From: Trichosphaerium sp. ATCC 40318
Taxonomy: Eukaryota > Protista > Tubulinea
NCBI GenBank assembly: GCA_038496445.1
Contig: JALMLS010000186.1
Coordinates: 1-64,000, forward strand
Direction: 5' to 3'
Length of the DNA stretch: 64,000 nucleotides
Each line of letters begins with the position of its first letter. Position 1 is the stretch's first letter. A program made the translations under genes and the position numbers. Below, one piece after another: positions 3,409 to 64,000 of the stretch. The notes below the pieces were generated by a model. That model was not told where the DNA came from. It did not search any database and worked only from the letters and a program-made list of their open reading frames with translations.

Positions 3409-4052
3409 ATGGCAAACAATAAATCAGTCTCAAATAACGACACAACCCTATTATTACCTGTAGAGCTTACCTACCATATTGTAGATCAAATAAGGTCAAA
3501 AAAACAGTTTAACGTTTTTAAATCATTAAACACAATGTACCATGATATAGTCACCAAGAACTTACTCTACAGGGTAACCTTGAAGATAGAATGACTTATT
3601 TTAACACTTATTAGCGTTTTTGTGTTGAAAAGAAAGGTTTTTTTGTATACAGAAGGATGAAGAGATATGCAATACTGGACATTAATGGATTACTAATTTA
3701 CAGAGTACGATGAAGTTCTATTGTTGAACTTACTGAATTAAATGCCAGTCTGCACTTGGTATTAAAAAGCTGGAGCACATCAAGTTTTCTGATATGATAC
3801 ATGTGCAAAATGAACCTCTAGTATACTCAGTTTGGTCACACTCTTGGTCCGTTAAGTTTCTACAAGAGACAACTCGAAAAGAGACTATAAGATTTTATAG
3901 CATTAAAACTGAAGAACAAGCACGTGATTTTTATCTAGATTTTATAGTGTTGCCTTTTTAATGTTCTTTAACTCTTTGAATAGAAACAAGATTGGTTGTA
4001 TCATATACAACTAGGATGGGACTTGTCAATTGAACACAATAAATCTCAATAA
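3409..4052 (+). CDS. F-box-like + PH domain protein, copy 1
   Basis: Exons 3409-3573, 3615-3704, 3749-3919 and 3984-4052 join in frame. N-terminal LLPVELTYHI. PH pattern EKKG..KR..IL...LLIY...IKF...TEEQKQDWL. The last intron is GC-AG. Confidence 0.8.
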
Positions 4053-4476
4053 TTATTGAGTTGATCAACTAATTAGTGTTTTATCTTGCCTGTATTTGCG
4101 TTGGTATTGCTGTCACGTTGAAAGTGCTGTAGTAATTTTGTTGCTCAATGCCACTTAAGATAAATAACATCTCTTAAACCAAGGCGTAAGTAATACAGAA
4201 CCAAATAAAGTCACTCCAAGGTTGTTGTCTATCACACATTAATTGGCATCATATCAAGTTTTGTTACATGTGCTATCACTGTAAGCTACGGTAGCTTAGA
4301 TGTTCTAACAGGTAGCGTTTTAGAGAAGTTTTACGTTAGACATCAGCTGGATGGGTTATTTGGTGAGTTGTTTTATTGCACAGCGATCATGAAGAGTACA
4401 AAGGAAGGTTTGATGTGTTTAAACTGAAATACATCGTGATTGTTGTTAACAACTGAGAAGGTCATTGACCACAAAC

Positions 4477-7117
4477 CTAACACCAAGGCGCCCATATTTT
4501 TCCGGCTACTGGATCACTTGGGTGTACAATAGGTCCACACTCAGGATCTAGAGGAGAAAACATCAGCTAAAATTGCGTACAGGCTTTTAGAATAAAAGGT
4601 CACTTACCTGGATGTCCTGTTGGAACGCCAGATTCATCTATTTCTTTTAATCTAGCAAGCAATGTCTTAACAACATCAGGATTTTCAGCAGCAACATCAT
4701 GATGCTCTGTAGGATCAGTGGACAAGTCGTATAACTCAACATTTAATTGCGGAAGACTATCATGCCCAGATCCAGAAGTACAGTACCTAATTCAAAGAAA
4801 ATAAGTTAAATCACGTGCCCCAAAAAAGGAGAAAAAAACACGAAAGGAAGAAAGTTCAGATTACCCGTAGAGCCTCTTTGTATTTGAAACGCTTTTGAAT
4901 AAGTTGCATTGTGATGTTTCTAGATTTAGTGTCCATGCATTACATGAAGTGTTCTTCATACATGAATCGCAACAAAGAGTTTCAGTGCTTGAAGCAACTT
5001 TTTGGAAAGGTGTTTCTGTGAAACAAACACCAGCAACTGTCTGACATTGAAGAAGAGGATTTAAAGCGTATAAAGGAGCTGTTAGATTAACAGGAGCATA
5101 CCATCCATCAGGTGTTCCTATGGTTTGCAGTTACATATAATGAAGGAAAAGTGGATTTAGATTTACCTCCAGATTGTTGTAGAAGTTTCCATTTTCCTAC
5201 ACGAATGCCTCTGTTCATACTTGGCTTATCATCAACGCCGTAAAGTACTTCATTACGAACTGCTTTTCCAGAATTTGAAATAGAATCCCATTGATCGACA
5301 CCTAGAGAAGCACAAGGTTAAGTAAAGCAAGTAACAAAAAACAAAATAAAAACGCTTTCATTTGATTTGTGGTCGCTAATGCGTACCATCTAGATCTGAA
5401 GGTGCCTTAGCACCTGCTATACTTGATAGCGTTGGCAGCCAATCAGCAGAATGCATCATGTTATTGTTCGTGTAGGCTGTTTTCGCCAACATTGTACCAT
5501 GAACTAAAGCTGTTCCTCTTGTACCACCTTGTGTTGTTAGCGCTTTTAAGTGCTATATTACTGATAACTACTACCTTCCCAAACACTGTGCTTTCCACCG
5601 CGAAGAGGCCAGTTCCTTGAACCTACCGCATCATTTGTAGTAGTAGGTCCTAAACACAACGACCATCAGTACAATAACTCGAGTCATTAGACAAAATAAG
5701 GAATCTCACCGCCATTATCAGTTGTGAATACAGTAAATGTGTTTTCCCACATTCCTTTCTTCTTTAGCGCAGCTGTTACATTTCCCAATCCTGTAAAAAA
5801 TAACTTGTTAAGCCAATTCCTGTGTTTCAAAAAAAAAGTAACAAAACCAATGAAACCAAAGACAAATATTTTAATTCCTTTCACTTAGTTATAGTTGAAA
5901 AAGTATTTCAATAGAACACAGACTCAATAGACTGGCAATACGCATAAAAAACATATTTTTGATTACGTTAACACGAGAAAATAATGAGAAAACAAAAGAG
6001 ATAAAAGTACCTTCGTCCATACAGCTAAGCATCCCAGCAAAAGTCCTGCGTTTCTTATTCTCTATAGTATGTATATACGGATCAACGTAAGACTTAGGAA
6101 CTTGGGCAGGGGAATGTACAGCTTGATAAGCAAGATACATGAACAAAGGCTTTTCAGCATCATGCTTCTCAATCACCTATTTGCCTAGGCTTAGCGAGTA
6201 AAGAAAAATTACAATACTCACTTCTATTGCTCGTTCAGAAAACAGTGTTGTCGAGTACTTCCCAATAGCTTCTGAAGCTACTCTAGAACATCCTTCACCA
6301 CACCTTTGGAGCAAAGTCAGAAAGTGTTACATACTTTGAACGACAGAGAAAACGTACTGAGAAGAAGTGTCATCTCTGAAGTCATAGAACCCACCTTCTT
6401 TGTGTTCGAAGTAACTCTCGCCTCCTGATTTCCCAGTTAAACACAAGCACAATTATATGGCCTAATTTTCTTACCTCCATAGTAACCGTAAAAGCTATTG
6501 AAACCTCTGAAAGTTGGTGTGTAATCCCATTTGTGAAATCCGAGATGCCATTTTCCAACTTAAAAAAAAACTAGTTAAGCCAACATTCTGTCAACACTTC
6601 AAAATCTTTTTGAACAAAAAAAAGCGTACTGGCGTGTGTTTCGTAGCCAGCTTCCTTTAATACATCAGCTGTGGTGTTTATATTCAAGGGTAATCCAAAA
6701 GCGCTTGTTGGAGGTATAACGTCATTAATGCCAGTGTGTAGAGGGTATCTAACACAAAAATAATTTATGAGAAAACTGCTGAAGAAAAAAAGACCGGTTT
6801 TCGCTTCTACGTACCTTCCACTCAAAAAAGTCGACCTTGTTGGAGAGCAAACGTCTTGTACGTAGTACTGGTTGAGTATAACTCCTATTGGAGGTGGTTA
6901 AAACAGTCATTGTATAGCGCGAGAAATTATAAAAAAAACACGTGCCTTCGGCAGCTAAAGCATCAACATTAGGCGTATTTATTTGATGGGAGCGAAACCC
7001 CACATCGTCGAATCCAAGGTCATCCACTATAACGAAAAGTATGTGCGGTTGTTTAGCACTATAAGATAAAGCGCAAAACGCAAGAATGATTGATAGGAAA
7101 AGCGCACTAGGTGGCAT
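4477..7117 (-). CDS. Arylsulfatase B/I/J-like S1 sulfatase with PAN/apple insert
   Basis: Signal peptide, [17 protein letters not shown] (CxPxR), [26 protein letters not shown] and terminal WAPWC. Multi-exon. Confidence 0.93.
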
Positions 7118-7331
7118 AGTCAATCAACTTGTCAATTTACTTTTCCGTTGACTTTTTTTCACAACTCACAACCTCCCTTAACACCTTCGCGTCCAGTAAC
7201 ACTCAAAGTAGTCCAATTATTACGTATTTACTACTGTGGCAATACTGTTGACGTTTTGACGTCAACATAGATCGTTTATTTGAATCTAAAAGTACATTGA
7301 TTCTGTTTTGTTCTTTTTTTTTTTTGTTAGT

Positions 7332-9798
7332 TTACAATACCAAGTCATCTCCAAGAATATACTCAGAGGGTGTTGGTAAGTCTAGAAAATCATCAATATC
7401 TGCACTTAAAAAAGGTTCCGAGATGCTATCTGGGCTGAAAGTAGGCAGTAAGTCAAGCATAGGGTTCTGTTCAACTGCGACTTGACCAGGAAGAGGAAGA
7501 AGAGGAGCGGCGGTAGTTTTTCTTGTTGTCAGCCCGAATAATGCATCAACAATCAAGCTCTTATCGTAGTCCAAACCGGTATCTGCTGCAAGTTGTACAA
7601 GCGACCTATAGGAAAAATTAACCTGAGGTGGATACAATAAAACCAGAATTGCGCTAGCCTACGTGTAGGCAAAATGTCAAACAAATTTTTGGTTTTCAGG
7701 CACAACAATCAACACGTGATGACTTGAAGTTAATGCAATGTGTCAATTTTATGTTATAGTATAACGTACGGTAATAAATGAGAAGCTTGAATTGAAAAGT
7801 TGGTGTGTAAATACGTGAATATCTAATAGTTTGTTAATATTAAGCTGTTCTTAAAATATTCTTACCTCTAAAAAGAAAGGAGCATCTCCTGAACGTATAG
7901 CTATTGCAGTTAAATCGTATAACATACAAGTAGTAGCTGGACATCTATCTTTGCAAGTTGGCGGTCGAATTAATTGAGAATAGGCATCTTTCGCCAACTA
8001 CAACAAAAAATAGAGTTAAGTGACGTAATACAATACTTGGCTTAGTCTGCCAAAAATATCTTGTACCTTCAATGCATACGTTGTATATCCGCCTGAAAAA
8101 TAAAGAATAGCTGTTATAAAATCAACTATAAAAGTCCATGATACTACAAGGCCATTTTTAACATCTTTACTAGTTATTGCTTTAAAAAAAGTTTTTACTC
8201 TCGTTAGATCATTCAAGTAAACAGCAAATTGATGCTCTGGCTAAACAAAGATGATCAGCGTCTTATACATGAATTAATAAGTTACACTTACTATAGTTAA
8301 TATCTGGAAGCCTCTAGGCCTACGAGCATCACTTGGACCTCGAGGTAGCTCCTGAGAAACAGAGAGCCAAATCTTTAAATTGTTAATTTGTTATTGGGTT
8401 GCTACCGATGTTGAACTCTTACTTTACCAGCAATACTCCATATTACTTGAACGCCAAGTGGAAGAGATATGTTATCAGGATCATCAATGAGGTGTGATAT
8501 TGATTTATTAATTTTAATTATCTCTGCTAGGGCTTTAGGTCTAAAAAGAAAGTTTTTAGGAAAAAAAAAACTAAAAAAGATGAAAGTAGTTTTACTTTGC
8601 CCTCAGTTCAGGTAGAGTAAAGCATAGCTAAACTACCACAAAATTGCGGGTAACTATTCACTGTGGTTAATTAATTCGCACGTGCCTGTTTGTTAACATT
8701 TGCGGTGAAAACAGATTACACCTTCTTGCTATTGTTTTTAATCTATACAACTCTGTACTATGAAGTGATTTCGGATCATCACATAGAGCCTCTATCATAT
8801 CCCTTCCTTTCTCTTTATATTCTGTAGCAGCTTCAATCTGTCCAGCATAAAAAGAGTACTCTCCAACTAAAACCAATCCGCCTTTTTGAAAAAAAAAGTC
8901 AAACAAACTTTCTTTTGGTGCAAAGAATATACCCGCAATACTATGGGTATTCGTATGTGCTAAGTTTAACGACACTTGTTTCGCTAAATTAATGAGGTGC
9001 TCTCCATGCGAATAGTTATCAGTTATCCTCGCTCCCAACGCTAGCATCGCTAATAGTTCAACCATATCTGGATCTATTGACCAACCTATTCGCATGTGGT
9101 TAAAAAAAAATTAAACTCTCCTTGCTTCTCGTTTACATACTTGTACTGGTTTGAAAGGTATTTATTATATTCTCTATTGGCCACTGACGCGTACCTGCGC
9201 CCTGTAGACAATATTGTAAGGATGGCTTATGACGTGGACGCTTTCCGTGAAACGCAACAGAAAATAACAAAAAATCGTTTACACGTACAAAAGTCGGTTT
9301 AAATCGGTGTTGATACGCTGCAAGCCATCGAGAAAGATTAGCAGATACGTTTAGATTACATGAAAGCCTCCACAGAGTCTGTTGTTATTTATTGAGTTTA
9401 CAAAATAAATACAACGCCGTAAAAACCTCCAACGTACTGTATGGTCGCGTTTGCTTGCCAATTGCTGGTATTTTGTCCGCCAATTATCCGTTTCTTTTTT
9501 TTGAAGCGCTAGCTGGTTTTCTAGGTCAAGCAAATGCTTTGTTCGTCGTTGTCGAAGTCCTAATGTAATTACAATTTTGTACGACTTTTTAACGATTTGT
9601 TTAACGCTTATTCAGCGTACCTGTTGTTGGTCCTCTTTTCTTGGGCGTTTTGTAAACACATTCTAAGTTTCTGTCTTTACAACGCTTACATGGTTGTTCT
9701 CCATCACATTTAGCATGTTTTGACCTACAATTTGTACACGCCCGTCTGTTAGCGTTCAAACGACGCTTTTTTTTAGGTGGTTCGCTTTCGCTTGCCAT
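7332..9798 (-). CDS. Zn(II)2Cys6 binuclear-cluster transcription factor
   Basis: NLS PKKKRR, then ACTNCRSKHAKCDGEQPCKRCKDRNLEC and a coiled coil. The downstream exons are approximate. Confidence 0.85.
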
Positions 9799-10607: not shown

Positions 10608-13058
10608 ATGGAACCAAAACACCTCCTATTGGTAGCTTTGTTCTGTTTCGTAGGCTACCATGTCTCTGCAGCATCCACAATCGCTTCAAGTGACTCACCT
10701 TGGCCAAAAGGCCTAATTGCATTTACGGATGATGGCACGTACACCCAGGAGCAGTGGAAAGAGCATTTTCGTAGCCCAGAAGCTTTGGCCGGCAAACGTA
10801 ACACGGAGCAATGTATCAAACCTGACAGTATAACACACACTGCTTTTGATATCTCCTGGACGATTTCTTTCGTCGATAGGATAGAATGTAATGGCAAAGG
10901 CTTTGCGCTTGAAGAAATTAGTACTCTGGTACGGAGTATAATTCTGTAGTGTCATTAATGGCGTCTTAGGCTATTCCAACAATCCTAGACGTTTTGGACT
11001 ACATGGCATCACACTTTGATTTCGCAGGCTCCATTACACTTGAAATATCAGTACGATACTTTCAAATATCACACCCGCAGTTCACGGGCAAAAAAAGTGA
11101 AAATAGAATTTAATCTTTTGTCGCTTAGGAATCTGATACGACGGCTCAGGCGCTTGCTCAAGGAGGATCATTTTATTACGCAGCAAGCGGTACGTGAACA
11201 ATCATGTTCACATGGTGAACATAACCTTTTCGCTGGAAAACTATATTATTGTCTTTATACATCGTTATTAGTGTCTTATATGCTATTTGTAGGATGGTTG
11301 AGATCTAAGTTTCATACTAAACTAGCTACTGGCAGATCGAGACAAGAACAACCTGATGCTTTCATGCAATATCAATTTCAGAGTACGTGGTATTTGTTCC
11401 TATTTTGATTTGTAAACTAGCGCCAGTCGCTAGCAAAAACAAAAAAAAAACCAGCCCTCAACAACAAGGCCAATACTGTTCTATTCGTTCAAATACTTGG
11501 ATTTTGTTTCTGTTCTCTCAGAAACACGTGTTATATTTACCCATTTCAAATTTATTTTTACTTTTTTTCTATCCACATAAAAATGCCTTGCGTTTTATTT
11601 CGCTTATAAAAACAATGTTTTCAAGCTCGGGTAAAAAAAGTAGAGAAGCGAAATTTTCAAAAGGGGAAAAAAAGAAAGTTTTGCCTGAAGTTGACTTTTT
11701 AGTTGTGTTTTTTCTTGCTAATCTGGTTTGGTAGATAATGATTGGATTTACCTTAATGGTACAAAAACGAAGCAAAGACAAGTTGATTTTTGGCTCACTA
11801 CACTACACGAGTTAACTCATGCATTGGGTTTTGTTAGTAGCGTAGGCACGTGGTTTTTTTTGGCGTCTTGTCGTTTTTAAGTATCTCCCTTTTGACTCTG
11901 CTTATTGATTTGATCTGACAAATCATTGTAGGTGATATTACTGGCACAAGTCAGTTCTCTTCTTCTGTCGGTAAGTTGTTTTTTTGCTCATTTGATGATT
12001 CTTTTTTTTTTCTTATTATTTTTTAAAGACCTTCGTACTCGATTTGATGAGCATTTGTTCTCCCTCAGTGAACAACAATTTTTGTTTGATAGAACCACTA
12101 AAGCACTTATTGTTCCGAGTGCAGTTTTAGATGGTAAATCGGTATGTAAAAAATAGACCAATAGCTATGAAATCTTCCTTCCTCCATTTTCTTTGCTCTT
12201 GTGACTTGCCTATTAACTTATGTCGATCTTTGTAAATAGGGAGAAATAGTAACTAGAGGAGATAATGTAGTAGATTTATTGACGATCACTGCATTACCTG
12301 TAGTTCATGCACCAAGCCCTTACGTGTACGATAACCATTCTACCCCGTTTGTTGAAAATTACTTGATCTTATGGAACTGTATAGAAAAGGAAGTAGCTTG
12401 TCTCATATAGATAAACGCCAAGGGTATACAACTTCTATGGAAGCTACTAGTTCTCTAGAATGTGGAAGACACCGTGGATGGTCAGCACTTGACCTCGCAA
12501 TGCTAAAAGGTAAAGCAATACAATTTCTCATATCAGATTGCTAACAGTTTTCCTTTTAGATATGGGCATCAATGTTATAGGAGAACCTCTTGTTGAAGAG
12601 CCTGCACCAGAATGCACTGATGCAAATGATGATTCGGTGGATACAGGTGGGGTTTTTTCACCTGGTTCGTCAACTGCAAGTATGTGATTGTTTTTTTCCC
12701 ACTGCAACAGCTGTCTTTTTTTGCTTTTCCATTTTATTCCTTTTCTTCATTTTGCTCTGATATGTTAAACATCAAACTATCAGTACTCAACAACATTATT
12801 TACATATTTAAGTTCTATTGGTTTATTTTTGTTTAATACTTGTGGTTGTGTCATCAACCGCTTGAATTGTTGAGGGATTTTTTTAGACGCTTTTTTTTTA
12901 CATTTTCATTTTCTTTGCTATTTTCTTTGCATGTGTTGCATTGTTTATTTAATTGTTGCTTCTTAGTCGCCATTTATGTTGCTATTGGACTTGTATTTCT
13001 TATTATTGTCGTTATAATCATTCTTGTTATTGTGTACTTTACAATGAAAAAAACTTAA
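10608..13058 (+). CDS. Membrane-anchored zincin (HExxH) metalloprotease-like protein
   Basis: Signal peptide, LHELTHALGF near 11805, WSALDLAMLKDMG, and a C-terminal TM helix followed by KKT-stop. Confidence 0.75.
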
Positions 13059-13393: not shown

Positions 13394-14057
13394 CTATGTA
13401 GATTTATTGTGTTCAATTGACAAGTCCCATCCTAGTTGTATACGATACAACCAATCTTGTTTCTATTCAAAGAGTTAAAAAACATTAAAAAAGGCAATAC
13501 TATAAAATCTATAAAAGGTCACGTGCTTGTTCTTCAGTTTTAACATAATAAAATCTTGTAATCTCTTTTCGAGTTCTCTCTTGTAGAAACTTAATGGACC
13601 AAGAGAATGGATAAACTGATGACATATCAGGTTCGCTTTGCACGTGTATCATATCAGAAAACTTGATGAACCTCATCATTCTCTGGCCATGCGTAGACTA
13701 TCATTAATTAATTCAGTAAGTTCAAATTACAACTTGTTCGTACGCGGTAAACTACCAATCCATTAATTTCCAGTATTGCAACTCTGTGCTTCCCAAACGT
13801 CTTAATAGGCCCACCAGACACAAAATAGCCTTTCTTTTCAACACAGAAACGCTAGCAAGTGTTAAAATAAGTTATTATATCTTCAAGTTTACCCTGTAGA
13901 GTAAGTTCTTGGTGACTATATCATGGTACATTGTGTTTAATGATTTAAAAACGTTAAACTGCTTTTTTGACCTTATTTGATCTACAATATGGTAGGTAAG
14001 CTCTACAGGTAATAATGGGGTTTTGTCGTTATTTGCGACTGATTTATTGTTTGCCAT
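13394..14057 (-). CDS. F-box-like + PH domain protein, copy 2
   Basis: Same four-exon structure as copy 1. GC donor at 13526. Confidence 0.8.
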
Positions 14058-14559
14058 TCATGCACGTGTTGTCAACAAAGATAAATAATACTGATAATTT
14101 TTTGAGTATTCAGTTGGGTTCAGAGCTGACGGATTTGGCACTTCTGGCAATTGTAAATCTCACTTTTTTAACTATGATGCGCTAGCATAGTCAGGAGGAA
14201 AATTTCTTGCAAATCCAACCGTTTCAAACCCACGGGATTTAACAAAACAGCAAAAATTGCTATTTGCATATTTGACCCTGGCAGCGTTTACAAGCCTACA
14301 GCAATGTTGTAATGTTGTGAGAGGTTTTAAGGTCCACAGCTTTATGAGAGCTATTGGTCTCAACAAGTTATTAAGTCATGAAGAGGAAGCCATCTGTTAA
14401 AAAAAATAATTTCTTCAAGTTAGCTTCCTTTAACGGCATTCTGTTTCTTTAAGGAAGGTCATATAGCACTGTTTTAGACAAAATCACTTTACTTAACTAA
14501 ATCATTTACTGTGAAGGAACCTGTATTTTGGAGAATCAATAAGGGGCGAGAACTTAATT

Positions 14560-15219
14560 CTATGTAGATTGATTGTGTTCAATTGACAAGTCCCATCCTA
14601 GTTGTATATGATACAACCAATCTTGTTTCTATTCAAAGAGTTAAAGAACATTAAAAAAGGCAATATTATAAAATCTATAAAAGGTCACGTGCTTGTTCTT
14701 CAGTTTCAACATAATAAAATCTTGTAATCTCTTTTCGAGTTGTCTCTTGTAGAAACTTAATGGACCAAGAGTGTGGCCAAACTGAGTATACTTGAGGTTC
14801 GCTTTGCACGTGTATCATATCAGAAAACTTGATGAACCTCATCTTTTTCTGGCCAACCCTAGACTGTCATTTAATTCAGTAAGTTCAAAATTAACACTTC
14901 ATCGTACTCTGTAAATTAGCAAGCCATTCAAGTCTAGTATTGCAATTCTCTTTTTCCAAAACTGCTTTATAGGTCCACTGGATCCAAAATAGCCTTTCTT
15001 TTCAACACATAAACGCTAACAAGTGTTAAAATATCATTCTATCTTCAAGGTTACCCTGTAGAGTAAATTCTTGGTGACTATATCATGGTACATTGTGTTT
15101 AATGATTTAAAAACGTTAAACTGTTTTTTTGACCTTATCTGATCTACAATATGGTAGGTAAGCTCTACAGGTAATAATAGGGTTGTGTCGTTATTTGAGA
15201 CCGATTTATTGTTTGCCAT
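14560..15219 (-). CDS. F-box-like + PH domain protein, copy 3
   Basis: Tandem duplicate of copy 2 (about 13300-14070 vs 14485-15232). KKGYFGSSGPIKQFWKKR is a canonical PH beta1-beta2. GC donor at 14692. Confidence 0.82.
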
Positions 15220-15519
15220 TCATGCACGTGTTAAAAAATGATAGAAAACTGCTCAATTTTTGGATTTTAATAGTACTCATTGTAAACTTTGTACATAATA
15301 AGTATTGTCTGAAACTGTGTGTATGCGATATTTAGTAATAGTAACTCAATTGCAACTAAGTTTTACTCAGTGAAGAGGAGAATGAGAATGAACTACTTCC
15401 ACTTTGTCAAAGAAAAGTGTCCATGCTAGAAATGAAGGGTGCTGGTTTGTATTTGTACCACAACAGTAAATATAGTAGGATAAGTTTTATTGACAAGTGA
15501 TCTGAACTTTGAGTTGTCA

Positions 15520-18168
15520 TTATATATTTACAACTGCTTCTTTTCTAGCAGCAAATTGTGTCTGTACAATTTTCAAATAAGCAGGCGTTGTCTTCAACAA
15601 CTCCTAGAGCTTACTTAGTTCCTTGACTATTTTTTTTAACACTTACTTGATGAGTTCCTTTTCCTATCACGTGACCATTCTCTAGGACAAGTATTTGATC
15701 TGCATGAACCACTGTTGAAAGCCTTGTTGATTTGTCAGTGAGAAGTTACTTCATCTGTAAGATATACCTGTGTGCAATTATAACTTGAGTGACACTATGA
15801 TGGAGTTGTTGTATTGAATCTTGGATAGCCTTTTCAGAGACGCTATCTAGAGAACTTGTGCTTTCATCGAATATCAGCAACGAAGGCTCTACAAGTAACG
15901 CTCTAGCAATAGCAACACGCTGTCTTTGCCCACCTACAATGACATTACTTTATGGATTCAAGAAAGAATGTACCTGACAGCTTAATGCCACGTTCTCCAA
16001 TTATGGAGTCATAGCCGTCAGGTGCTTTGATAATAAAATCATGAGCATTAGCGCTAACAGTGATTTAGTTCTATGTCGAAAAGAACTTTCTTAATCTAAT
16101 ACCGTTTTGCGGGTGTAATGATTTCTTCTAGAGTTGCATCTGGTTTACCGTATGAAATGTTGTCCGCTATAGATCTATCAAAAAGATTGCTATCCTGCAT
16201 CACAATAGAAACTCTCTTTCTAAGAGAGGCTCTTTTGGCTCGTTTCAGATTGATACCGTCCCAAAGGATAGATCCTTCTTGAGGATCATAAAATCTGAGT
16301 AACAGATTTGCTAGGGTAGTCTTGCCCGCGCCAGAATGACCTAAACACATATTTTAAGTATATTTAATACAGGTGCAACAACAGGATGTCCTGATATTTA
16401 CAATCGAGTCACGAACTTTTGTTCAGCAGAAAACATGTGCTAATTAGTATGTACCAACAAGAGCTGTAGTTGTTCCTGCTTTGATTGAAAATGAAACCTA
16501 TCCAGATTGTATGTTATTTAGTATATTACAGTGTATGTTAAAGAAGGTACTTACGTTTTGAACTGCAGGAGTGGCACCTTTCGTTGTATTATAAGTGAAC
16601 GAAACATCTCGAAATTCTACTTCTTTGTTTAAATCCGGAAGATCTTTTGCATTTTTATCATCCTTAAGGGTATCCTTTGTAGCAATGATATCATATAGCT
16701 GTACAACTCTATCAATACTTCCCATCATTCTTGTGTAACCCTCAGCGAACGTATCTAAGTAGAAAATGAGAACCAGCACCAAACAAGAGCAATCTATCTT
16801 CATGTTATTCTAATAAACACGTGTGGCATGGAAATAATCAATTTATAGATTGTTTTTAGAGTCACTTAAAGCGTTAGATGCATCGCCTACTGATTGCGTA
16901 CTTAAAGGATTAAGAGTCATGTCTTGATATCGTATCAATGCCAACAATGTACCAACAGTCATATTTCCATTGTTTATCTGCGATACACCGTAAAGAATTA
17001 CTGCAACTTTAGTGCTAGCCTCCGCTAGCTTTTGGACACAGTTTCTACTGTACATCAAAGTATCTTGTTGGTATTCTGTTAAATGATAACCATGCCATCT
17101 CTGAGCGTAGCGAAAGACTTCGGCTTCATCTAAGACGAAAAAGTAAGAAAAAACTAAGATCCTTTCGTTACCTCTTCCGAATGATTTAACAGAACGAATA
17201 TTGGATACACCATCGTATAGAGTTTGGTTTGAACTTTTATAGTACTCAGTATTCAGGTTACTAAGCTTTTTTCTAGCACCATACCAATAATATCCAAAAA
17301 AAAAGTTAACCGCAATTGTTGGTATAAACAACCACCATGGAGCTATCATAATTGCAGAACATAAGGCACCAATGAACGGTAAAAAGTCTATCAGTATATA
17401 TTTTCCGAAGACTAGGCTTATTAATGCCCAGACATTTCCTGAACCTTTCTGTATTTTAGCGCCAATTTCACCTAAACAACTTTATTAGTTTGGTACGAAC
17501 ACATCTGTTGCCGTTTCTCTGATATCTAAAAATGTTTGTACCTGCATTGGTGTTATCGTGCCAATCGGTGGGAAGTTCATAAAACCTTTTTAAGCCGCAG
17601 TAAAGCCATGAATCTTCAGTTTGAGTCGCTATGTACATTTTTATACTCATGCATATCATTCTGTTTATCCTTCTTAACATTACTACAACAAACCAGTACA
17701 ACATCAACCACTAAAGGCAATATAAATATCAAATATCGCAAGTATATTCAAAACCCATCTAAAATGAAGTTGTACATCTTAGCCACATAAATTTCGAAAA
17801 CCAGAATTACAAGGTACCTTCATGTTGGGAGATGTTGGATCTTTTAAAATTTGATCGATGATGCTTTTCAACATTGAAGGTGTAGCAACACAAAGAAGAG
17901 CGTATGTTACACTAAAAAGAATACAGCAGGCAAGTAATCTTGGGTCTGATCCTAACCTAGAAAAGATGTTATTTTTTTATTTTTTTTGAAAAAATTCCAG
18001 CCAAAACACGTGCCAAGCAGTTAGGGCTACGCTTTTAATTACTTTGAGTTCTTTGCTGTCTTTTGAATTACATGTCTGTTTAACAACTTTCTCCACTATA
18101 TTGACATTCTCCAGAGTACGTGGTTTGGATTGTATAAACGAAAGAAGAGGCGTTGCTTTCTCTGTCAT
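15520..18168 (-). CDS. ABCB-type half transporter (TMD + NBD)
   Basis: TM domain, Walker [10 protein letters not shown], signature LSGGQRQR, Walker [13 protein letters not shown] and IIAHRLST. Confidence 0.93.
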
Positions 18169-18788: not shown

Positions 18789-21700
18789 ATGTGGCACTCG
18801 CTTGCCTTTATTGTATCGCTGGTTGCGCTTTCACAAGCACAAACGTATACGCTACCTCTAGTTTTCGTAACAACAGACTCAGGTATTGTTTTATAAGCGC
18901 TAGCGTACCAACAAGTTGTAACTTCCCTTTCCATGCTAAACGCTACGATAGGCTCTCTACCTACGAACAGTAGTACCAAGCAAGGAGGTAAGCGCGTTTA
19001 ACGCAAAATGCGAATGTTTTGATCTTAATAATTGGCTAGCTGGCATGGTCATTGCGTGGCGCGGCGAAGGTAACCAATTAGAGACATACTCACAGATTTA
19101 TTCTGTACTAAACGCATAAAAGGACAAACGACGCTAATAAGCGATAAAAACGATGCTCAATATCATAAGTATGATGGCAGGATAGGTATTGAGATACGTG
19201 GGCAGCTCTCCGCAACATACCCGAAAAAACAGTACAGCGTCGAAACCAGGAAAGCTGATGGTTCCAATAACAACGTAGAAATTCTTGGTCTCCCAAAAGT
19301 GCGCTCTGGTTTCATATTTTAACGTATTTAAACGCCGGAAAAGTAAAATCTTCTTTGAATTTTTGAGCGCTTCTTTGTGACATTTGACAAGCATTAAAAA
19401 CGTAAGTGTGTATGTGCAGCAATGTATACTTATCGTGGCGTTGCTTTGATGTTGTTTTTATTTCAAAAGAGGGTGTTAGGATCAACTAAAGCGGTTTTAA
19501 ATGCACGGATTAACATCTGGGTATAAAATTAATGTTTTCATAAGGAGAACGATTGGATACTTTCTGGTCCTTATTCTACAGGATCAGAACATACTTTTAT
19601 GTATAATAAGTTCACATATGACATATCAAATGATTTGGGTTACTACGCTGCTCGTAGCAAGTACGTCTTGGCCTTTTCTTTCTGAATTGTTCAAAAAAAG
19701 CACGTGTGCATCAAACTGTTGTCCTTTTTTTTCAATTTTACTGATCCACTGTGTATAAGGTATTGTGAGTTATTTATAAATGATGAGTATCTTGGTCTGT
19801 ACTTGTTTATGGAGAAGCCTCATAAACGTGATAAAAACCGTATTGATATAAAAAAAATGAAAGAAACAGATGTTTCTGGAGAAGCTGTTACAGGTGGGTA
19901 CCTTTTTTCTATTGATAAAGGATGGGTAGCTTCTAAAGGATGGGAATCAACTTACAGGTCAAATTATAATATAACAAATAACGAAGGTGGTGTTATAAGG
20001 TGAGTTTTGTTGCCTCTGTAAATAGGACTGACTTATGCTTTTTTTTCTTTACATTGTAAACTAGGCTTGAAGTTATTGAGCCTGATGATCCTGTTCCTGC
20101 TCAAATAGCTTATATGAGAAATCTATGGGATGAATTTGAGGAGGTATGTGCATCTTTCAGTGAGACAGTTATTGATGAACCAGCTACTGGTAAGTACATA
20201 CTTCAAATCAAAGTTGTTTGTTCTGAACTTATGTTTGTTTAATAGGTGCTCACACATTTATTGATTTCGATTCATTTGCTGCTATATTCCTCATCAATGA
20301 GTTTGCAAGAAACATAGATTCTTTTCGTATCAGTACACATATGTATAAAGATAGAGGATTCGATGAACTTGTTCATTTTGGACCAGCTTGGTATGCACTT
20401 TTTTGTAAGGGCGATTTCATTTGCCCTCATTTTCTTCTTGAGTTTTTTGACTTACACAGACCTCACAGGGATTTTAACTTTGCTTATGCTTTCAGAGGAG
20501 ATGCGTCTGTTTCTAAATGGTACTGGTCAAGCTCTCCAAGTGATCAGTTTTCAATACCCTTTTGGTACATAGATTTGCTAGAACAGTCTGTTTTTGTACT
20601 CATCGCTCTCTGTAAAGGTGGAAACCTCTTGTTTATAAAAGTATTCGATTCACAAGTGTTATACAATCTCAATGGAATTCTTGGCGTAAGGTATGAGTAT
20701 TTCTTAAGGGCGTAAAAATACAGCAACAGTTTATGAACGGAAAGTTAAACAACATTTATCAATACTCAAATTACTTTTCTTCTAACTTACTGTAGAGCGT
20801 TCTATCATACAACGCCTTAGTGTCAAGAATAGATTCATATGTCACAGAAATAAAACCTGCAGCTGAGCGTGATCTTGCCAAGTACGCCAAAAAAAATGAG
20901 TTTCAAAAGGGAACAAAAAAGGTTACCAACAAGCTTACTTTCTTCTAGGTGGAGGCGTGATGGTAATCCTACAACATTTTTCACAGTGAGTACTGAAGTT
21001 TTTAGTATTTTATCACGTGTCATATTTCATTTCGGACACCCATAAGAGTAAAATAATCATCTATTGTAGAATGCAGTTACAAAATTTAAATCATGGCTGG
21101 AACTTCGTGGAAACTGGTTATCAAGATGTCTTACTCTTGCAAAATCAGGGAGGTACACTTGTCATGGATTAATGAATATTGTTATTTAATAAGGTAACTA
21201 TAGGGGTACTATAGTAGCCGCTGAAACGCCCATCTTAGAGTATGGAGTTGCTCAAGAGTGGTTCAGAGAACTGAGGTTAAGAATATGTGCTAAAGGCACA
21301 CCAACTTCCAGGTTTACTCATTGGACTGGTGCAAGTAGTTATTGGGAGAATGGAAGCTCTAGTACACATGCATGCATTAACGTACGTTTTATAAAACCAA
21401 TGAATAAGGTTCACATGTAAAAGCAGTTTTTTTTTTGTTCTTGTTCTTGTAGCTCAAGGTTGTATATTAATTTTTATCATAGGTAGAACTTATAAGTTCG
21501 GCAGCGATCATTGTTACAGCTAATTTTGAGGATGTTACTCCTGTTAATAACTTGGTCATCAACGAAATCATGTATGATGCTGAAGGATTTGGTGACTACA
21601 AGGGTAATTAATTTCTGTTCTTTTTTTGTTTACTTATGCGCACAAGGAAAACAATTCGATTGGATTGAACTCAAGAACATTGGAGATACTACAATAAATC

Positions 21701-45092: not shown

Positions 45093-46201
45093 CTTCCCAT
45101 TCCCAAGATACTCTGAACTGAGCATTATCCACCGTGTACCCTTTCCAAGGCGTGCTTTGCAAGCCTTTTATTTGGGTTGGGTATTTTGAGTAAACCCACT
45201 GTTGTCCTTTCGGGTGGATCAAAATCCACCCTAGGACGGTTACTTGAATAATTATGGATTGGCGGTTCTGTATTCTACCTCTGGACATTCGACATATTTA
45301 CCCATGAGCATTATCGACCAAGATTCTTGTAGAGCACTGTGTACAGCTTTCTGACTAAAAACTTGTTGACAATTTTATCATAGAGCCCTATAGATACGGC
45401 GTATGTTATGAAAACAGGAGTAGCTTAGGTGCTAGCACTCACTTAAAAGCAGAGTTTTAGATTCTGGCTTGAGACAGGCCCTACTGACAAGTTTAGGTGG
45501 CGTTGGCTTACACAAGCTTCATTTAGACATGTCCGTCAACTCAGTTATTTGGACAGGCCAAAGCAGACAATAAACAAAAACTAAAGTTCATTGGAATGAT
45601 TTACAACACTTAGCTTACAAGTCATAGCTTCCACAAATAATTATTACTAGCCCATTTAACTTTATGTACACCCATCAATACCTTGGTACCCTCTTCAGTT
45701 GCATGTGTATTATATAAGGTAATAGTATGAACACCAACTAAGTACTTCAAACATTCATCTGTAATTGCAGTACCATCTAAATCAATCTCATGAACACCAG
45801 CCAATGCCTTGACACCATTATCTGTAACAGCTGTATTTGATAAATCAATTGTATGAACACCACTAAAGCCTTGATGCCCTCATCTGAAATTAAATTACAT
45901 TCTGATAAGTTAATAGTATGTACACGCTCCAATAAGTACAAGTGCCTATGATATTTTCTGAAGTCAAACAGTATCAATAGAGGTATTTTGAAGTAAAGGG
46001 CTTCCAGAAAGAAGAGATATTTCTCTGTCGCTTTTAACCATTATTACGCCATATCCAACATGGTTGTGAACAATATCTCGCAATAAACGGCATGTTTGTG
46101 CTGAGTGGAGCGTAAAAGAGCCTTGCTTCAGGATATGAACGATTATTTCTACAGGCAGGTAAATAAGGTTCAATGCGTTACTATCTTCCATAATGCAAAT
46201 G
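45093..46201. repeat. About 1-kb segment duplicated in inverted orientation at 61160-62094
   Basis: Highly similar reverse-complement sequence, including the non-coding flank. Confidence 0.85.
45622..46191 (-). pseudogene. F-box-like + LRR (GVHTIDLS-type) gene, frameshifted
   Basis: LPVEIIVHI, then AGVHEIDLDGTAITDECLKYL repeats, split over three ORFs by frameshifts. Confidence 0.75.
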
Positions 46202-48372: not shown

Positions 48373-49126
48373 TACGTCTCTATTTTTGACTACTAGAATA
48401 TGTTGCTTGTGTACATGTTACCGCAACACATCATACCTTCATTCATTCTAACATTGTTACACCACTATCAGGTACCTGTACTTACAATTGCGTCATTTGT
48501 CAACACAAATAATACGTAATCTTTAAACGTCTGATTATACCATCTGCATAGTAGAACTAGCCCGGTTGAGTATTATCATACCACATTCTACATTGATTGT
48601 ATGAGTATAATGACAGTATAAATAAGTATTTTACTGGCGTTTGATAAGTGAGAGGTAGTTGTTTAAGTACGGTAGTATCGTAAAACAACATCAGCAAGTA
48701 GCAGTTCTATACAATGGCAGATTACGATTCAAAAAGTTTTTGTGTTGGTTGATTGAATGTTTCAATTGATTTATGTAATTTGTTGTATATGTACAAGAGA
48801 TAACTCCAATTTAATAAATGGGAAGGGTCTCTGGCTACGTGATCCAGGGGATCGAAGCTGAGTGAGACGTATTCTCTCCTCCAATCTGGTATTGTAGATC
48901 AACAAGAACGCGTGAATCTAACTGGATTTATGAAAAATCTTGCTGGTGTACAAAACCATTGATTTATCTGATACACACGCAACAGATGATTGGCTTGCTC
49001 CACATTCTAAACACTTTTTATTAATACTTGGCATTGTTTGTCCATGATATACAATTTATTTCCGAGTTATTCAAACGACATGTCTAATGCTCAAAAACAG
49101 TACTACATGCTTTTTTGTCTATTTAG

Positions 49127-50667
49127 TTAATCTTGTTGATGTCCTAAAGGAAAAAGAATAGAGGTGGAGTTCCGCTGACACGTGTTTTCATCGTCAATAC
49201 CTTGGTTTTCAAAACAGTCATCAGTGTCTGGCCAGTAATTTGTTGAGTTATAAGAAGATACTGTCGTGGATTGATATACTGGTTCTATTACTCTTTTCCT
49301 CCAACTTGTCAATAATACAATGGTAGTACAATATGACCACTGTGAAATAAGGGACGTCTACAAAAAATAATTAACTCCAAATTTGGTTTTTTGTTTTCTT
49401 ACTATGGGTCTCCACGGCTTGTTTCTAAATTTTTTCCAAAACGTTAATGCTAACAAATCAAGCCAATATATGCAAACCATGATAGTACCCAATACGAGGA
49501 ATGCTTGGACCTTGAAAGTAATATAAACTAGTAAGAAACAGTTGGTTTTCATAAAAGATATGTTTTTCACAAAAGATGTTAAGGTTTGGGTCAATACCCT
49601 AACCAGCTACAACCGGCAAAAAGGCAGAACCAGGTAATGTCGAAAAGTACAAGGATTAAAAAGCTACGTGTAATTTCCTTGAAATCAACAAATCGACTTA
49701 ATTTCTTAGGCAAAGCGACCAATCTCTAAATTTTACCAGCAGTTTAATGGAGAAAAGTCAGTTGTTACCTTTGAGATTATAATCTGTGTTGCTGGTGATC
49801 TAAGATCCTTTTTTATTCTCATCACTTCCCGAAGAGTTATGTAGCCAATAGTAAAATATACGAGCACTTCTATTGTCAAAAAACAGTGGAAGCCAATAGA
49901 AAGGGAGTATGTCTTGTGTATCTTATTTTCATACCAAAGAATGCTCAATATGACACTGTAAATAACTTGACTAACAAGGTCTGATATTATCAAGACAATA
50001 ATTATGGTATTGATTAAATGTTCACAACCAGTGGCTCGTTTGTTGAGCTTCCAAAGACATTGAGTATACCTCAATAGGTTCAATGCCCAAGCAGTGTTAC
50101 TAAAATATAAGTTAGCGTCTCACCCGTCCTGCATGTTGTGCGCACATAAGCCAGATACAGACACCAAGAATTAAACCGTTCACACTTATTGGCATAATTT
50201 TTCTCACTCCAAGCGGGTCAATACCATAGAAAGTCAATCGAACTGAAATGTTCGTCATTAATAAACTTATAAATTCATTTTTAGGCATACGTAAAACTCC
50301 TACTATGATCGCTGCTCGTTGTAGGCGCATCAATATCTTTGTAGAACCACCTCCATGTCTACAGAAAAAAAACCTTGCTGTTAGTAAAAACAAACAGTAA
50401 CGTGCCTATGTGGTAAAAAGCACGTGGGTTTAAGCAGTTTGAATATCACCAAGAGGAAAAAACCGTTAGTTTACCTCAAGTAATCGTATTGACAGACATA
50501 CACCGGTACAATAAACACTGTATCAACGCATTAAGAAAACAAGCCATAAAAACGAGAAAATTAAGAAAAACAAACCATAAAAAATGAGTTGTACCAAGCA
50601 ACAATCCCCATAAACTAGCCCCAGTAAGTTTAAAAGCGATTTGAAAGCGCTCACTGTACTGTTCCAT
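49127..50667 (-). CDS. 7TM receptor-like protein, paralogue B
   Basis: Same exon structure as paralogue A, in convergent orientation. Confidence 0.7.
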
Positions 50668-58365: not shown

Positions 58366-61159
58366 ATATACCATTTTTTCCTTATTTATTAAGTTGTCTG
58401 AAGGTCTATGACATTAGCAGATTGTGTTACACTTTGAAACAATGCTGTAGTGGCTTTGGGGAGTATACTAAGGTGTAAAACAACTATTGGGACAGGATAA
58501 AAAAGTGGCGATTTTGAAAAAAAAAAGTGGAGATTTTCATGATCACGGACAAATGATATTACATCATTTGTGGCTTGAACAATTCTAGATGATTCAGGGT
58601 ACATCATCCGAATGTTTGAGTAAACCTGTGGGCATGTTAATCCAAGCATAATAAAAAACCAATACCTCATGGTGCATATCCTTTTCGTGGTGCACTCTAC
58701 GCGCCAGGTATGCCATGTTATTAGCGTTAGGTACCTCATAGCCATTAAGAGGATCTTTAGATTCATCTTGTAAAAAAGCTTTATACTAGTACATAAAAAC
58801 AATTAGTGATAGATGCTGATGTCATTTTTCATACCACACTTCGTTTTGGTATTTTGCATGCCAGATCTTTTTTAATGCTAGTTTTTGCGCCAGTTCCAAG
58901 TTTTAATTTATGAACGGGAATAGGGAGGCACTGTAGAGAATGCCCTAACAATTTTGGTTATTTTAAACTTCAATTAAACTGTTGTTGTTTATAGTACCTT
59001 CTGTTTGTCTGATATCCAACACTTGAGCATGTTCAGCGTCTTTACCAGCTCTTGAGACAATCTGTAACTTAGCTGTACAAATCCCGCGTCTTTTGCAACG
59101 GTAATACCATGTAATCCCTTTGTGTGTGTTTGCATGGCGTATGTGACTATATTGTCGAGCCCACTTTTTCTCTTTTGAACAATAAAAAACAGGGTTGTTT
59201 CCTTGGTTCCATGCAAGCAGCTTGACGTTACCTATTGATGGTATTGCTGGCCGTAATGGTGGCTCATTAGCGTCCAACATCAAACACAAATAGTAAGTAT
59301 GGCTTGTTAAGTGATGTAGGATCTTTCAAACGCTCATAACACAATGTTCAAGGCTGTGTATACACTTCTTGAAGTTGTTTACAGATTTTTGTTATACTTA
59401 CCTCCCATGTTACAAAAAAGTAACTATTGATATCTCATGGTATGTTAGAAGCACTGTAGACATATTTCACCAATTGTAAAAAAGTATGGAGCAAAATCAA
59501 AAGATAATAAAGTAAACCATCTCGCAAGTACCTACACTATGCTTTTCTACGCGCAAAAACTCTCTTACAGTACAATATGCTGCTGTTGTGAAATAAAAAC
59601 CTTAAACGGGTTAAAAATTTGCAAAATGCATCACTATGTACTGTTTAAGGTGTAGTAGTACATACCATGTGAGATACGTGTAAAACCACATGGTACATTT
59701 AAAGCAAAAAAAAAACCCAACACGTGTTTTTTCTAAATCGGGCATCACTTTGTATTTTCAACTCAAATACTTTGTTTCTGGCTGTGCGTGCTGAAAATAA
59801 TTTTTACAGCATTTTGTAACAAAGTTGACAACATCGTAAATATTGACAAAAAAAGTTGACAAAGTTACTATCACGGTAAATCCAACTTCAAAGGCTATAA
59901 AAAAATCAATCCAGAACATAGAAGCTAAGATAGCACCCAGAATGAGAAACGCTAGGACCTTTTGAAGAATCAGTATTACGACCAAAACAAACATTAATCA
60001 ATTGCTACCTTTGAGATTATAATCTGTGTTGCTGGTGATCTAAGATTCTTTTTTATTCTCATCACCTTACGTAAGCCAATTATAAAATATATCAATAGTT
60101 GTTTAGTCAAAATAGTTTCAACCACAATGTAAAGGAAATATTTCTTATGCAAATATAGCTTGTTTTCATGAAAGAGTATGCTCGCTGTAATACTATTTCC
60201 AAGTTGAAGTAAAAAGTCTGATATTATCAATACAGTTATTGTTATGTTTGTTAAATATTCACATCTTATATCCTTTGTATTGAACTTCCAAAGGCATTGA
60301 GTGTACCTCAATAGATTCAATGCCCAAGCTGTATCACTACAAAAATTAAATGAGGATTTCCCACTTTTCTGGTTTACAAAAGGCACGTGCATTAACCAAA
60401 CACAGACACCATTAAAAAACCCATCCAACACTACAGGTAAGGTTTTTCTTGCTCCAAGTGGGTCAATACCATACCAGGTCATTCGCACTAGTTAGCTATT
60501 ACTGGAATTACAATAATTAAGGCTTAGTGTACATAAAACTCCCATAATTATTGCAGCTCGTTGTAGACGCATCAAAATCTTTGTAGAACCGCCTCCATGC
60601 CTAAAAATAAAACTTTAGCTAAATGCTGTCATTCTCGAGACTTTTTAGAAGTGAAAAAACACGTGTTTAGTTGGCAACTAATAAACAGTTTGTTATTACA
60701 CAATTCTTTGGTTTATGCGTTTTTGAATTGATTTCTCTCGGAAGAGAGAAATCAAGGATAAAGATAACGTTATAATACCAAAGCTGTTGAAAATACATAT
60801 GGTGGGAGAAGGGGTTCAAAATCACGTGTTTAGCAAACGGTTTTTTTGTGTCTGCATTAAAACTCGTTATCTTACCTCAAATAATTGATCAACATACTAA
60901 GAAACCAAACCATAAAATGAGTTGTACCAAGCAACAATCCCCATAAACAAGCTCCAGTAAGTTTAAAAGCGAGCTGATAGCCTTGACTATATATTTCCAT
61001 TTGAAATGATTTTCTAGAAACAAGACGACAGTCAACTGTTGTCTGCGAACAGTCAGCTATACTTCCTCTGTAGTATTCATGCTGTCTAAGCATTACTGCT
61101 TGACTGTGTCTGCGCTGTGATAAGCATTAGGTTACTTTTACTATTGGAGTGTACGTTGT

Positions 61160-62094: not shown

Positions 62095-62480
62095 ACAACT
62101 TCAATTCGAATGTCTTTATTATTTTACAACAGACACTTGATTTAACCTTATACGACAGCGCAGCACTACCGTTAACCTTCAGCTGAAAATGCAACCATTC
62201 TGAGCGAGTAGGATCCTCGGGTGATGTACAATTGTAATTGCGTTAGCTCAATTATTTGAGATATCTTGTGGTTATCCCAAACTGACTAAAAACTAGTCTG
62301 ATACGCTATAGTTGCGATTCTATGTTCTTGCATAGGAAATTACTGTCTACAGTACGAAAACGTGATCAAGACTTACTGCCTGTACAAAAGTCCAATTGTA
62401 CAAAAAAAATCTGGTTTTTTTCTTGTCTACAAGAAGTCCTACACGTAACAAAAAGCAAAGTTGAAAATTGTATCTATGAC

Positions 62481-63170
62481 TCAATAGCGAACGTAGTTTT
62501 CAGTCCAATGTCCACGTTCTGGAGGAGTGAACGAGAAGCGAGCTGTCATCGATTTTCTGAAAATAATCTTTTTTCTTGTTACATCATGACATCTTTGAAG
62601 ATACTTTACTGTACTGCTCATTTCTATATCTTCTTTTCTAAACCAAACAGGTATCCGCGTTTTTTGACCACGTCTTGCTGAGAATTCTATTTCAAAAGAC
62701 GGAAACTGGCACTGATAAATTACAACGTCGTTTAAGAACACTGCACGCATTGAAGAAGCTTTTTCGACTTTTGCAAGCCGGTATGCCTTGAGAACCCTTT
62801 TCATGCTTACAAAGCATCCGCATGGTATGACAGTAGTCTGTGAATGATAAAAATCCATCCGACAGTACTTTTGGTGTCGTTTGAAGATAGCATAAAAGTA
62901 CTTCCGTGGTTTCTTGCTCTCTGCGGCTAATCTGGTAGTGTACAATCTCTTCCACGATATTTTATCACCATTAGCTCGTTTTCTGGTGAAAAGTTGTAAA
63001 TCGCGGCTACAATGCTTTCTCCATGTCCTCCACGCGTTAGATATTGTTTTATGCCATGAATAGCAAACATTAGTACAGTTAAGCATAGAGAATGCGTCAA
63101 GGTACTCAACGAACAGATGAGCCCATAAATGCTCATCCACACGTAGATATTGCGGGGTTTTTTGCGACAT
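62481..63170 (-). CDS. Intronless F-box-like protein, unknown C-terminus
   Basis: 229-aa ORF. EHLWAHLFVEYLDAFSMLNCTNVCYSW...WRKHC fits an F-box pattern. Paralogue at 25 kb. Confidence 0.7.
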   Translation of the reverse strand: MSQKTPQYLRVDEHLWAHLFVEYLDAFSMLNCTNVCYSWHKTISNAWRTWRKHCSRDLQLFTRKRANGDKISWKRLYTTRLAAESKKPRKYFYAIFKRHQKYCRMDFYHSQTTVIPCGCFVSMKRVLKAYRLAKVEKASSMRAVFLNDVVIYQCQFPSFEIEFSARRGQKTRIPVWFRKEDIEMSSTVKYLQRCHDVTRKKIIFRKSMTARFSFTPPERGHWTENYVRY

Positions 63171-63422
63171 TGAGACAGTACGGAAAATTAGTAAACTAAT
63201 TGTGACTTTTCAACTGAAGTGGCACGTGTTCGGGCAGTTTTTGAACAGCAAGTTACAAACAAGGTTAAGCACTTTGCAACTAAATGAATAGAACTTTCTA
63301 AGTGTCGGACTTGGGTGTAGAATCTCTATTATCTACATGCCATGTACAGACAGCAAATTTTGTCCTGACCATGTGTGACTAAGGCGGTACAGAGTAAACT
63401 TAACCATCAGTTCCTGTTAACA

Positions 63423-64000
63423 ATGGCAGCTCCTTCTGATGCTGAACTTTCGAAAGATTTTACTTTAAACGATGGCACAAAGGGTCATTTAATAGTTAAG
63501 AGTGGCGATACAACTACAATCGAGCTGGTTTTTCCTGAGCATACGTGGTCTAGCACGAACGGACTCCAAACAATTCTTCAGGTCCTCTCACGACAAGCGC
63601 TGATTACAGAGCTAGAAAAAGATACATTTTCAATCACTAGAGCAAACCAGGTGACTCAAACTGTCAGTTGAGTCGTATCTTACATAATTATCCTAGAGCG
63701 AATACCATTTAACATGTGATCTTCTTCAAAGTCCTATTGTATTCCAACAATTGAAGGCGCACACTGCGCTAGAACAACACCTTCTTACACAGGTCACTGA
63801 TCTTCAAAAGCAAGTCACTGATCTTAAAGATAATGCGTTCATCAAAGGGATTGCTATACTTGAGGACAGACTTCCAGCTAATGGTCCAGGCACGTGATAT
63901 TTAGAGTTTTTCAATATAGTGCAAGTTAACGGAAAGACAGGAGGCGAGGCTAAAAACCAACAATGGTCAAGAAGACACTTCAATACAGTAGCAATCAACA
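63423..64000 (+). CDS. Partial spliced gene: coiled coil + phage-tail-like motif
   Basis: MAAPSDAEL..., VTDLQKQVTDLK, then IAILEDRLPANGPGGEAKNQQWSRRHFNT across a GC-AG intron. Runs off the end of the window. Confidence 0.55.

Follow-up and report, generated by a model that had tools for sequence, protein, structure and literature searches.

Few bases in eukaryotic genes are as conserved as the T at position +2 of the splice donor, and introns that begin with GC instead are usually sparse and scattered, with donors that mirror the GT consensus and are otherwise stronger than most GT donors. GC-AG introns are the main tolerated non-canonical class, making up ~0.8-1% of mammalian junctions (PMC13149111); in the cyst nematodes Globodera rostochiensis and G. 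pallida they reach 3.46%, then the highest share reported, and GC and GT donors there have a common consensus, CAGG[T/C]AAGT (PMC4901422). Here we describe GC-AG introns, with donors nearly confined to the heptamer GCACGTG, in a 64,000-nucleotide stretch of Trichosphaerium sp. ATCC 40318 (contig JALMLS010000186.1, positions 1 to 64,000; this whole stretch is referred to below as the window). They resemble the U2-type GC-AG introns of other eukaryotes in their GC start, AG end, branch site, short length and otherwise strong donor, but differ in their share, very roughly 4-6% of window introns on a rough total intron count, and in donors that do not mirror the GT consensus. The several-fold raised share, the occurrence in unrelated genes and the need to recognise them for correct gene models are features in common with Globodera; unlike in Globodera, GC is found here almost only with ACGTG at +3 to +7, where it completes an over-represented palindrome, CACGTG.

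The palindrome itself has counterparts elsewhere. The highly iterated palindrome HIP1 (GCGATCGC) of cyanobacteria is an 8-mer present many-fold over expectation in coding and non-coding DNA, the cause of which is unsettled. CACGTG is likewise a short over-represented palindrome of coding and non-coding DNA in which synonymous sites are recruited, but it is a hexamer, lies in a nuclear rather than a bacterial genome, and touches splice signals; we know of nothing HIP-like in a nuclear genome or touching splice signals. CACGTG is also the classical E-box/G-box core of bHLH/bZIP factors. The hexamer is identical and some copies lie near gene starts, but similar densities in exons, introns and splice donors would not be expected of regulatory sites. 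Introner-like, transposon-derived introns exemplify a DNA-level process that shapes many introns at once; unlike these, the GC introns of the window have no shared body sequence, terminal repeats or common length. GC-AG introns are themselves well known; confinement to GCACGTG, with C at +4 and G at +7, departs from what is known of them, and in full-text searches we found no published description of a palindrome-linked class of GC donors.

The window has a G+C content of 36% and is dense with genes on both strands, with short exons and introns mostly of 45-100 nt. Donor weights were derived from an expectation-maximization splice model fitted on frame-restoring candidate introns of the window. 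The fitted donor consensus is MAG/GTA(C/A)GT (the first slash marks the exon-intron boundary); among GT donors, position +4 is C in 40% and A in 37%, while position +7 is G in only 18%. GTACGT is therefore a normal donor in the window, and +2 is the one position at which GCACGTG deviates from a consensus-type donor. Both this model and a dynamic-programming gene finder, likewise constructed from the window, over-predict introns, and returned many false GC donors when GC was freely allowed; their use was limited to the donor weights and an approximate count of introns.

A first-pass annotation of the window had proposed seven GC-AG introns, all beginning with GCACGTG. The heptamer is indeed present at 3920(+), 13526(-), 14692(-), 6945(-), 18013(-), 60390(-) and 63890(+), and an AG 51-64 nt after each yields the junction peptides that were quoted (Table 1). 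The same annotation stated that the reading frame is restored only with the GC donor, and that use of the GT four bases downstream shifts the frame. The first statement does not extend to 60390, where the 54-nt segment is in frame and stop-free, so that the intron is not needed for the frame and finds its support in a paralogue and homologous proteins instead. The second is correct with the same acceptor, but not for the small-gene copies and 63890 if another AG is used.

Table 1. Introns, donors and donor candidates of the window. A slash in the donor column marks the exon-intron boundary; motif distances are from the 3' end of the intron.
Feature	Position	Strand	Length	Donor	Remarks
GC-AG intron 1, sulfatase gene (strongly supported)	6885-6945	-	61 nt	AAG/GCACGTGTT	branch-like TTAAC at 13 nt
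GC-AG intron, multi-pass membrane gene A (7TM A; strongly supported)	60337-60390	-	54 nt	AAT/GCACGTGCC	TTAAT at 9 nt
Homologous GT-AG intron, 7TM paralogue B	50100-50145	-	46 nt	TAT/GTGCGCACA	CTAAC at 12 nt
Probable GC-AG intron 1, ABC transporter gene	17957-18013	-	57 nt	TTG/GCACGTGTT	ATAAC at 12 nt
Probable GC-AG last intron, small-gene copy 1	3920-3983	+	64 nt	CAA/GCACGTGAT	TTAAC at 12 nt
Same last intron, small-gene copy 2 (probable)	13463-13526	-			conserved donor, TTAAC and acceptor
Same last intron, small-gene copy 3 (probable)	14629-14692	-			conserved donor, TTAAC and acceptor
Putative GC-AG intron	63890-63940	+	51 nt	CAG/GCACGTGAT	TTAAC at 11 nt; frame only
GC-AG intron with a different donor, LRR gene (well supported)	31422-31483	-	62 nt	AAG/GCAAGTTAC	GCAAGT type
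GCACGTG donor candidate, zinc metalloprotease-like gene	11846-12028	+	86 or 183 nt	TAG/GCACGTGGT	acceptor at 11931 (86 nt) or 12028 (183 nt)
Weak GCACGTG donor candidate	8541-8685	-	145 nt	CAG/GCACGTGCG	open frames continue across
Plausible GTACGTG donors keeping +2 T	11190-11196, 11383	+			open upstream frames, nearby acceptors
Plausible GTACGTG donors keeping +2 T	38686, 42453, 53803	-			open upstream frames, nearby acceptors

In the sulfatase gene, exons 1 to 3, the second of which is 70 nt long, encode after splicing a peptide of 62 residues that aligns without gaps to residues 7-67 of human arylsulfatase B (1fsu_A; E 6.8e-17). This alignment spans both junctions and includes the catalytic CSPTR motif, which is lost if the GC intron is read through. 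GT donors that would keep the frame, including one at +6, score -4.6 or less and would alter the spacing. The homology thus argues strongly that 6945-6885(-) is a real GC-AG intron.

The intron of 7TM A is placed by comparison with its paralogue 7TM B (49.0-50.7 kb), in which an intron interrupts the same codon and the exon flanks are conserved. An mRNA contig (L002 of JGI sample 3300016894, MMETSP), 99.9% identical to the window exons, skips exactly 50145-50100 and verifies five GT-AG introns of 7TM B in 48976-50665(-); the mRNA contigs of this sample (L001 and L002, with P0004 under the MMETSP label) come from the same organism as the window. The bodies of the two introns cannot be aligned, and the segment in B is 8 nt shorter. 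As an observation in its own right, each of the homologous donors (60383-60390 and 50138-50145) is an 8-nt palindrome, and the two have the same halves in exchanged order (GCAC-GTGC in A, GTGC-GCAC in B), a correspondence that may be coincidence. Neither the protein of B (P0001) nor a homologue with 40% identity (P0002) has the 18 residues that read-through adds in A, and the residues at the junction correspond: WLI/NTAW in P0001, WFI/DAAW in P0002, and WLI/DTAW in spliced 7TM A. The common codon, the transcript-verified intron in B and the homologous proteins link the GT intron of 7TM B to the GC intron of 7TM A, and make a strong case that 60390-60337(-) is a real GC-AG intron.

The first intron of the ABC transporter gene links an exon bearing an ATG to one that encodes transmembrane helix 1 but lacks a start codon that could be used; read-through leads to a stop. 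The sole GT alternative, GTTTTG at +6, keeps the frame and scores -6.2, compared to 4.0 for the GC donor, and the exon downstream contains an ABC_membrane domain. The junction region is poorly conserved, and we consider this GC-AG intron probable from its frame, start codon and donor score.

The small gene is present in three copies, in which the donor, the branch-like TTAAC and the acceptor of the last intron are all kept and 1-nt indels are confined to the 64-nt intron segment. Substitution rates do not separate the intron from the exons, exon 3 being more diverged than the intron. The three GC-AG introns are probable, and count as one evolutionary event. Searches of single flanking exons with Pfam gave few matches in general, and none in the exons or the 62-aa junction peptide of this gene, so the name PH, under which the first-pass annotation listed this gene, is not adopted, while its sulfatase and ABC assignments are confirmed. 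In all three copies a CACGTG precedes the start codon (CACGTGCATGAATGGCA...) by exactly 7 nt (3398-3403, 14063-14068 and 15225-15230); in copy 3, similarity to the other copies stops just upstream of it. Another CACGTG, encoding His-Val in copies 2 and 3 (13641-13646 and 14807-14812), is CATGTG in copy 1 (3800-3805), a synonymous CAC/CAT change and a C/T difference at the CpG of the palindrome.

The segment at 63890-63940(+) is a putative intron that the window does not allow to be verified. Its donor score, 5.8, is the best of all, and its pyrimidine tract is weak. A GT donor at +4 combined with a different AG likewise keeps the frame, with a poor donor score.

Contrary to the statement that no GC donor of any other sequence exists in the window, 31483-31422(-) in the LRR gene appears to be a GC-AG intron with a GCAAGT-type donor. 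It joins two long open frames, of 167 and 114 codons, and restores at the junction a cysteine-type LRR unit, L-S-I-E-G-C-A-N-V-T-D; the upstream exon has LRR matches in Pfam. Alternative GT donors score -1.3 or less, compared to 4.4 for the GC donor. The claim that all GC introns begin with GCACGTG is therefore too strong and fails by one, a counter-example that is well supported.

Two further GCACGTG sites are candidate donors. The one at 11846 lies directly 3' of an exon encoding HELTHALGF, in a gene with a weak Matrixin-type HExxH match (E 0.027); it restores the frame and scores 4.7, with GT alternatives at -1.3 or less. At 8685, no branch-like motif was found in the candidate intron and read-through meets a stop after 6 codons, which may just be the end of the gene. 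The GTACGTG donors that were said to persist at or near 11190, 11383, 38686, 42453 and 53803 are plausible by frame and acceptor. GC donors were not accepted at four other sites: at 32066(-) a good GT donor follows 12 nt further on, 44912(-) lies 5' of a start codon, 14062(+) is in antisense orientation, and the fourth is 18488(+).

We asked of whole site classes how often they behave as the donor of a frame-restoring intron, a test with a background pass rate of 11-12% (GCA, GAA and GTA; 11.5%). GCACGTG passes at 9 of 25 sites (p 0.0013), three times the background, compared to 0/6 for GCACGTH, 14/26 for GTACGTH and 1/9 for GTACGTG. The test misses short exons, and about five GTACGTG sites are plausible donors by inspection; two of the nine passing GCACGTG sites, 14062 and 44912, are false. 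A stricter version, with a minimum of 25 open codons on each side, lacked discriminating power (GC 13, GA 13, GG 5). In a rough census, donors of the form GYACGTG comprise 7 with GC and 5 with GT, and other donors ~1 with GC and ~170 with GT; this difference by context has a Fisher p of 5e-9, or of 1e-6 if the three paralogues are taken as a single case. About half of the GYACGTG donors are thus GC, compared to ~1 in 170 of the others. Position +7 is G in every GCACGT-type donor, which for the independent donors has a chance of 2e-4 to 1e-3 given 18-26% G.

The GC donors are also strong apart from +1 and +2. Nine of ten score 3.6-5.8 at the other positions, whereas the GT donors have a median of 2.8 and a 75th percentile of 3.5; across the full range, GC donors score 1.6-5.8 and frame-keeping GT alternatives -6.2 to 0.1. 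As nine of ten lie above the 75th percentile of GT donors, spliceosome tolerance is part of the explanation. Nevertheless, G at +7 in only 18% of GT donors, the absence of donor behaviour at GCACGTH sites and a 6.2-fold excess of CACGTG support a tie of the GC donors to the CACGTG hexamer beyond donor strength as such.

CACGTG occurs at 44 sites in the window, 6.2-fold over the expectation from composition and 1.7-fold over the maximal-order Markov expectation, and is the top over-represented hexamer. On both strands together there are 26 copies of GCACGTG and 9 of GTACGTG, and the base preceding ACGTG is C in 88 cases, T in 28, A in 29 and G in 5, although C makes up only 18% of bases. Whole-window CpG is at 0.70 of expectation, despite the six-fold enrichment of the CpG-centred CACGTG. 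As with HIP sequences, the palindrome is many-fold over expectation and is distributed over coding sequence, 5' untranslated regions (UTRs), introns, donors and spacers; GCACGTG copies that are not donors are intron-internal, in UTRs or promoters, coding or antisense. Relative to the Markov expectation, the one-mismatch neighbours GACGTG, CTCGTG and AACGTG are at 0.41, 0.42 and 1.07, on small counts. Copies in the 5' UTR exons are conserved in both 7TM paralogues. Among individual copies, those at 4812-4817, 19701-19706, 50421-50426 and 60660-60665 are inside introns or 5' UTR exons, and one of them immediately precedes the branch-like TTTAAC of a sulfatase intron.

The GC introns look like ordinary U2-type spliceosomal introns. 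Removal of the GC..AG segment gives the correct protein in the sulfatase and 7TM A, the other introns being judged on frame, and outside +1 and +2 the GC donors fit the GT consensus no worse than GT donors. TTAAC, ATAAC or TTAAT is present 9-13 nt from the 3' end in five independent introns, a position that matches the transcript-verified GT intron (CTAAC at 12), and intron lengths match those of neighbouring GT introns. Pyrimidines are enriched just ahead of the AG, though weakly so at 63890. U12-type signals (donor /RTATCCTT, branch site TCCTTAAC) are absent from the GC introns: the donors are GCACGTG, with no ATCC motif. They are first, middle and last introns of unrelated genes. Comparison of the GC intron bodies gave no shared sequence, with no pair above z 3.3 and those reaching 3.3 being T-rich low complexity.

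Taken together, we regard GC introns as established at two genes, the sulfatase and 7TM A, through homology, and the association of C at +2 with ACGTG as strong. With somewhat better than even confidence, we favour the explanation that pressure towards CACGTG produced the GC donors from consensus GTACGTG donors, within ordinary U2-type introns. GTACGTG is a common donor variant that a single transition, T to C at +2, turns into GCACGTG, and a strong, compartment-independent nuclear pressure that enriches the palindrome would have brought C at +2 to fixation in about half of the GYACGTG donors. Splicing could survive this because GC is the sole donor variant tolerated by the major spliceosome, and all other positions match the consensus. 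The C:T ratio is ~1.4:1 in donors and ~3:1 at all ACGTG sites, which fits partial resistance by selection for GT. We infer that the change ran from T to C and that its cause acts on DNA rather than on splicing; a force that makes CACGTG was also the interpretation of the first-pass annotation, of which the hexamer association is borne out, but the T-to-C conversion is not directly seen.

Several observations weigh against this explanation. No paralogous pair of GTACGTG and GCACGTG donors was observed; in the sole GT/GC pair, that of the 7TM genes, the GT copy is GTGCGCA rather than GTACGTG, so the pair shows no simple T-to-C step. Four of the seven sites are weaker (63890 and the three small-gene copies), and read-through or another splice pair is possible at each. 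In the small gene, a GT at +4 with an AG at +7 also keeps the frame, with a donor score of 0.1, and read-through would add 13 codons before a stop; at 63890, read-through gives Gly-Thr-stop at once, and only 19 downstream codons are inside the window. Depletion is not uniform among the one-off neighbours of CACGTG, TACGTG being at 1.44 of the Markov expectation (on small counts), and the GCAAGT donor of the LRR gene indicates that tolerance alone can also yield GC donors. The intron census comes from a home-made, over-predicting gene finder. No RNA evidence was found for any GC junction of the window, the mRNA contigs found being those of 7TM paralogue B only; a homologous-protein search gave no transcript-derived proteins for 7TM A, the ABC transporter or the 63890 gene, with a length window that excludes most full-length products.

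A more specific version is that a motif-directed drive on DNA, perhaps biased repair, conversion or modification-linked mutation, makes CACGTG from near-cognate sequences and overrides selection for T at +2. We put this forward tentatively, as somewhat short of an even prospect. If true, a whole class of GC-AG introns would have arisen as a side product of a highly iterated palindrome system in a eukaryote.

Alternatively, the pattern could reflect a splicing code, in which a GC donor needs additional base-pairing or protein contacts at +4 C and +7 G (through lineage-specific U1, U6 or U5, or a protein); selection on splicing, instead of a DNA bias across the genome, would then confine GC donors to GCACGTG, and the overlap with the palindrome would be incidental. 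Such a code would accommodate the well-above-average scores of the GC donors at all other positions, the finding that GCACGTH sites never behave as donors, and the departure of the consensus GTA(C/A)GT from the usual GTAAGT/GTRAGT. We nevertheless think it unlikely: GT donors have no preference for G at +7 (18%), the GCAAGTTAC donor appears functional, and CACGTG is equally over-represented away from donors, including in coding sequence and 5' UTRs. A splicing code also leaves unexplained that about half of GYACGTG donors carry C. A search with Rfam detected no small nuclear RNA genes in the window.

Still less probable, in our estimation, is that CACGTG is selected as the binding site of a dimeric bHLH/bZIP-type or chromatin protein, with the GCACGTG donors serving a dual function. 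The GC introns are first, internal or last, in unrelated genes and at no common distance from gene starts, and CACGTG is also found in coding sequence as synonymous variants, neither of which points to a regulatory site. In favour of binding are the E-box/G-box core itself and two sets of conserved copies, those 7 nt before the small-gene starts and those that the two 7TM genes have in their 5' UTR exons. That the pattern is in part an artefact, with several GC introns not spliced as proposed and the abundance of GCACGTG itself contributing, would agree with the near stops on read-through at 63890, in the small-gene copies and at 8685, with the existence of frame-keeping GT alternatives and with the two false sites among the nine, but is very improbable, given that homology pins down both the sulfatase and the 7TM junction, that the ABC gene requires its upstream start exon, that the GT alternatives score 0.1 or less, and that GCACGTG passes the frame test at three times the background rate.

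With GC donors several-fold commoner than usual and nearly confined to one heptamer, the window offers a natural experiment on how much pressure unrelated to splicing a splice signal can absorb, and points towards a way of generating non-canonical introns that had not been described. Splice donors would then be countable, polarisable sites for gauging the process that enriches CACGTG. For annotation, gene finders that forbid GC would break many gene models here, including the catalytic motif of the sulfatase and the start of the ABC transporter.

Apart from the introns, the window contains a large inverted duplication, in which a multi-exon gene at 19118-23701(+) corresponds to 40646-36229(-) with 69-86% identity and many intron positions in common. 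Further paralogous blocks are 25224-25825 with 62566-63170, and 45205-46201 with 62075-61160. A 222-codon open frame at 28731-29399(+), with a MORN-repeat match (E 5e-18), is possibly a single-exon gene.

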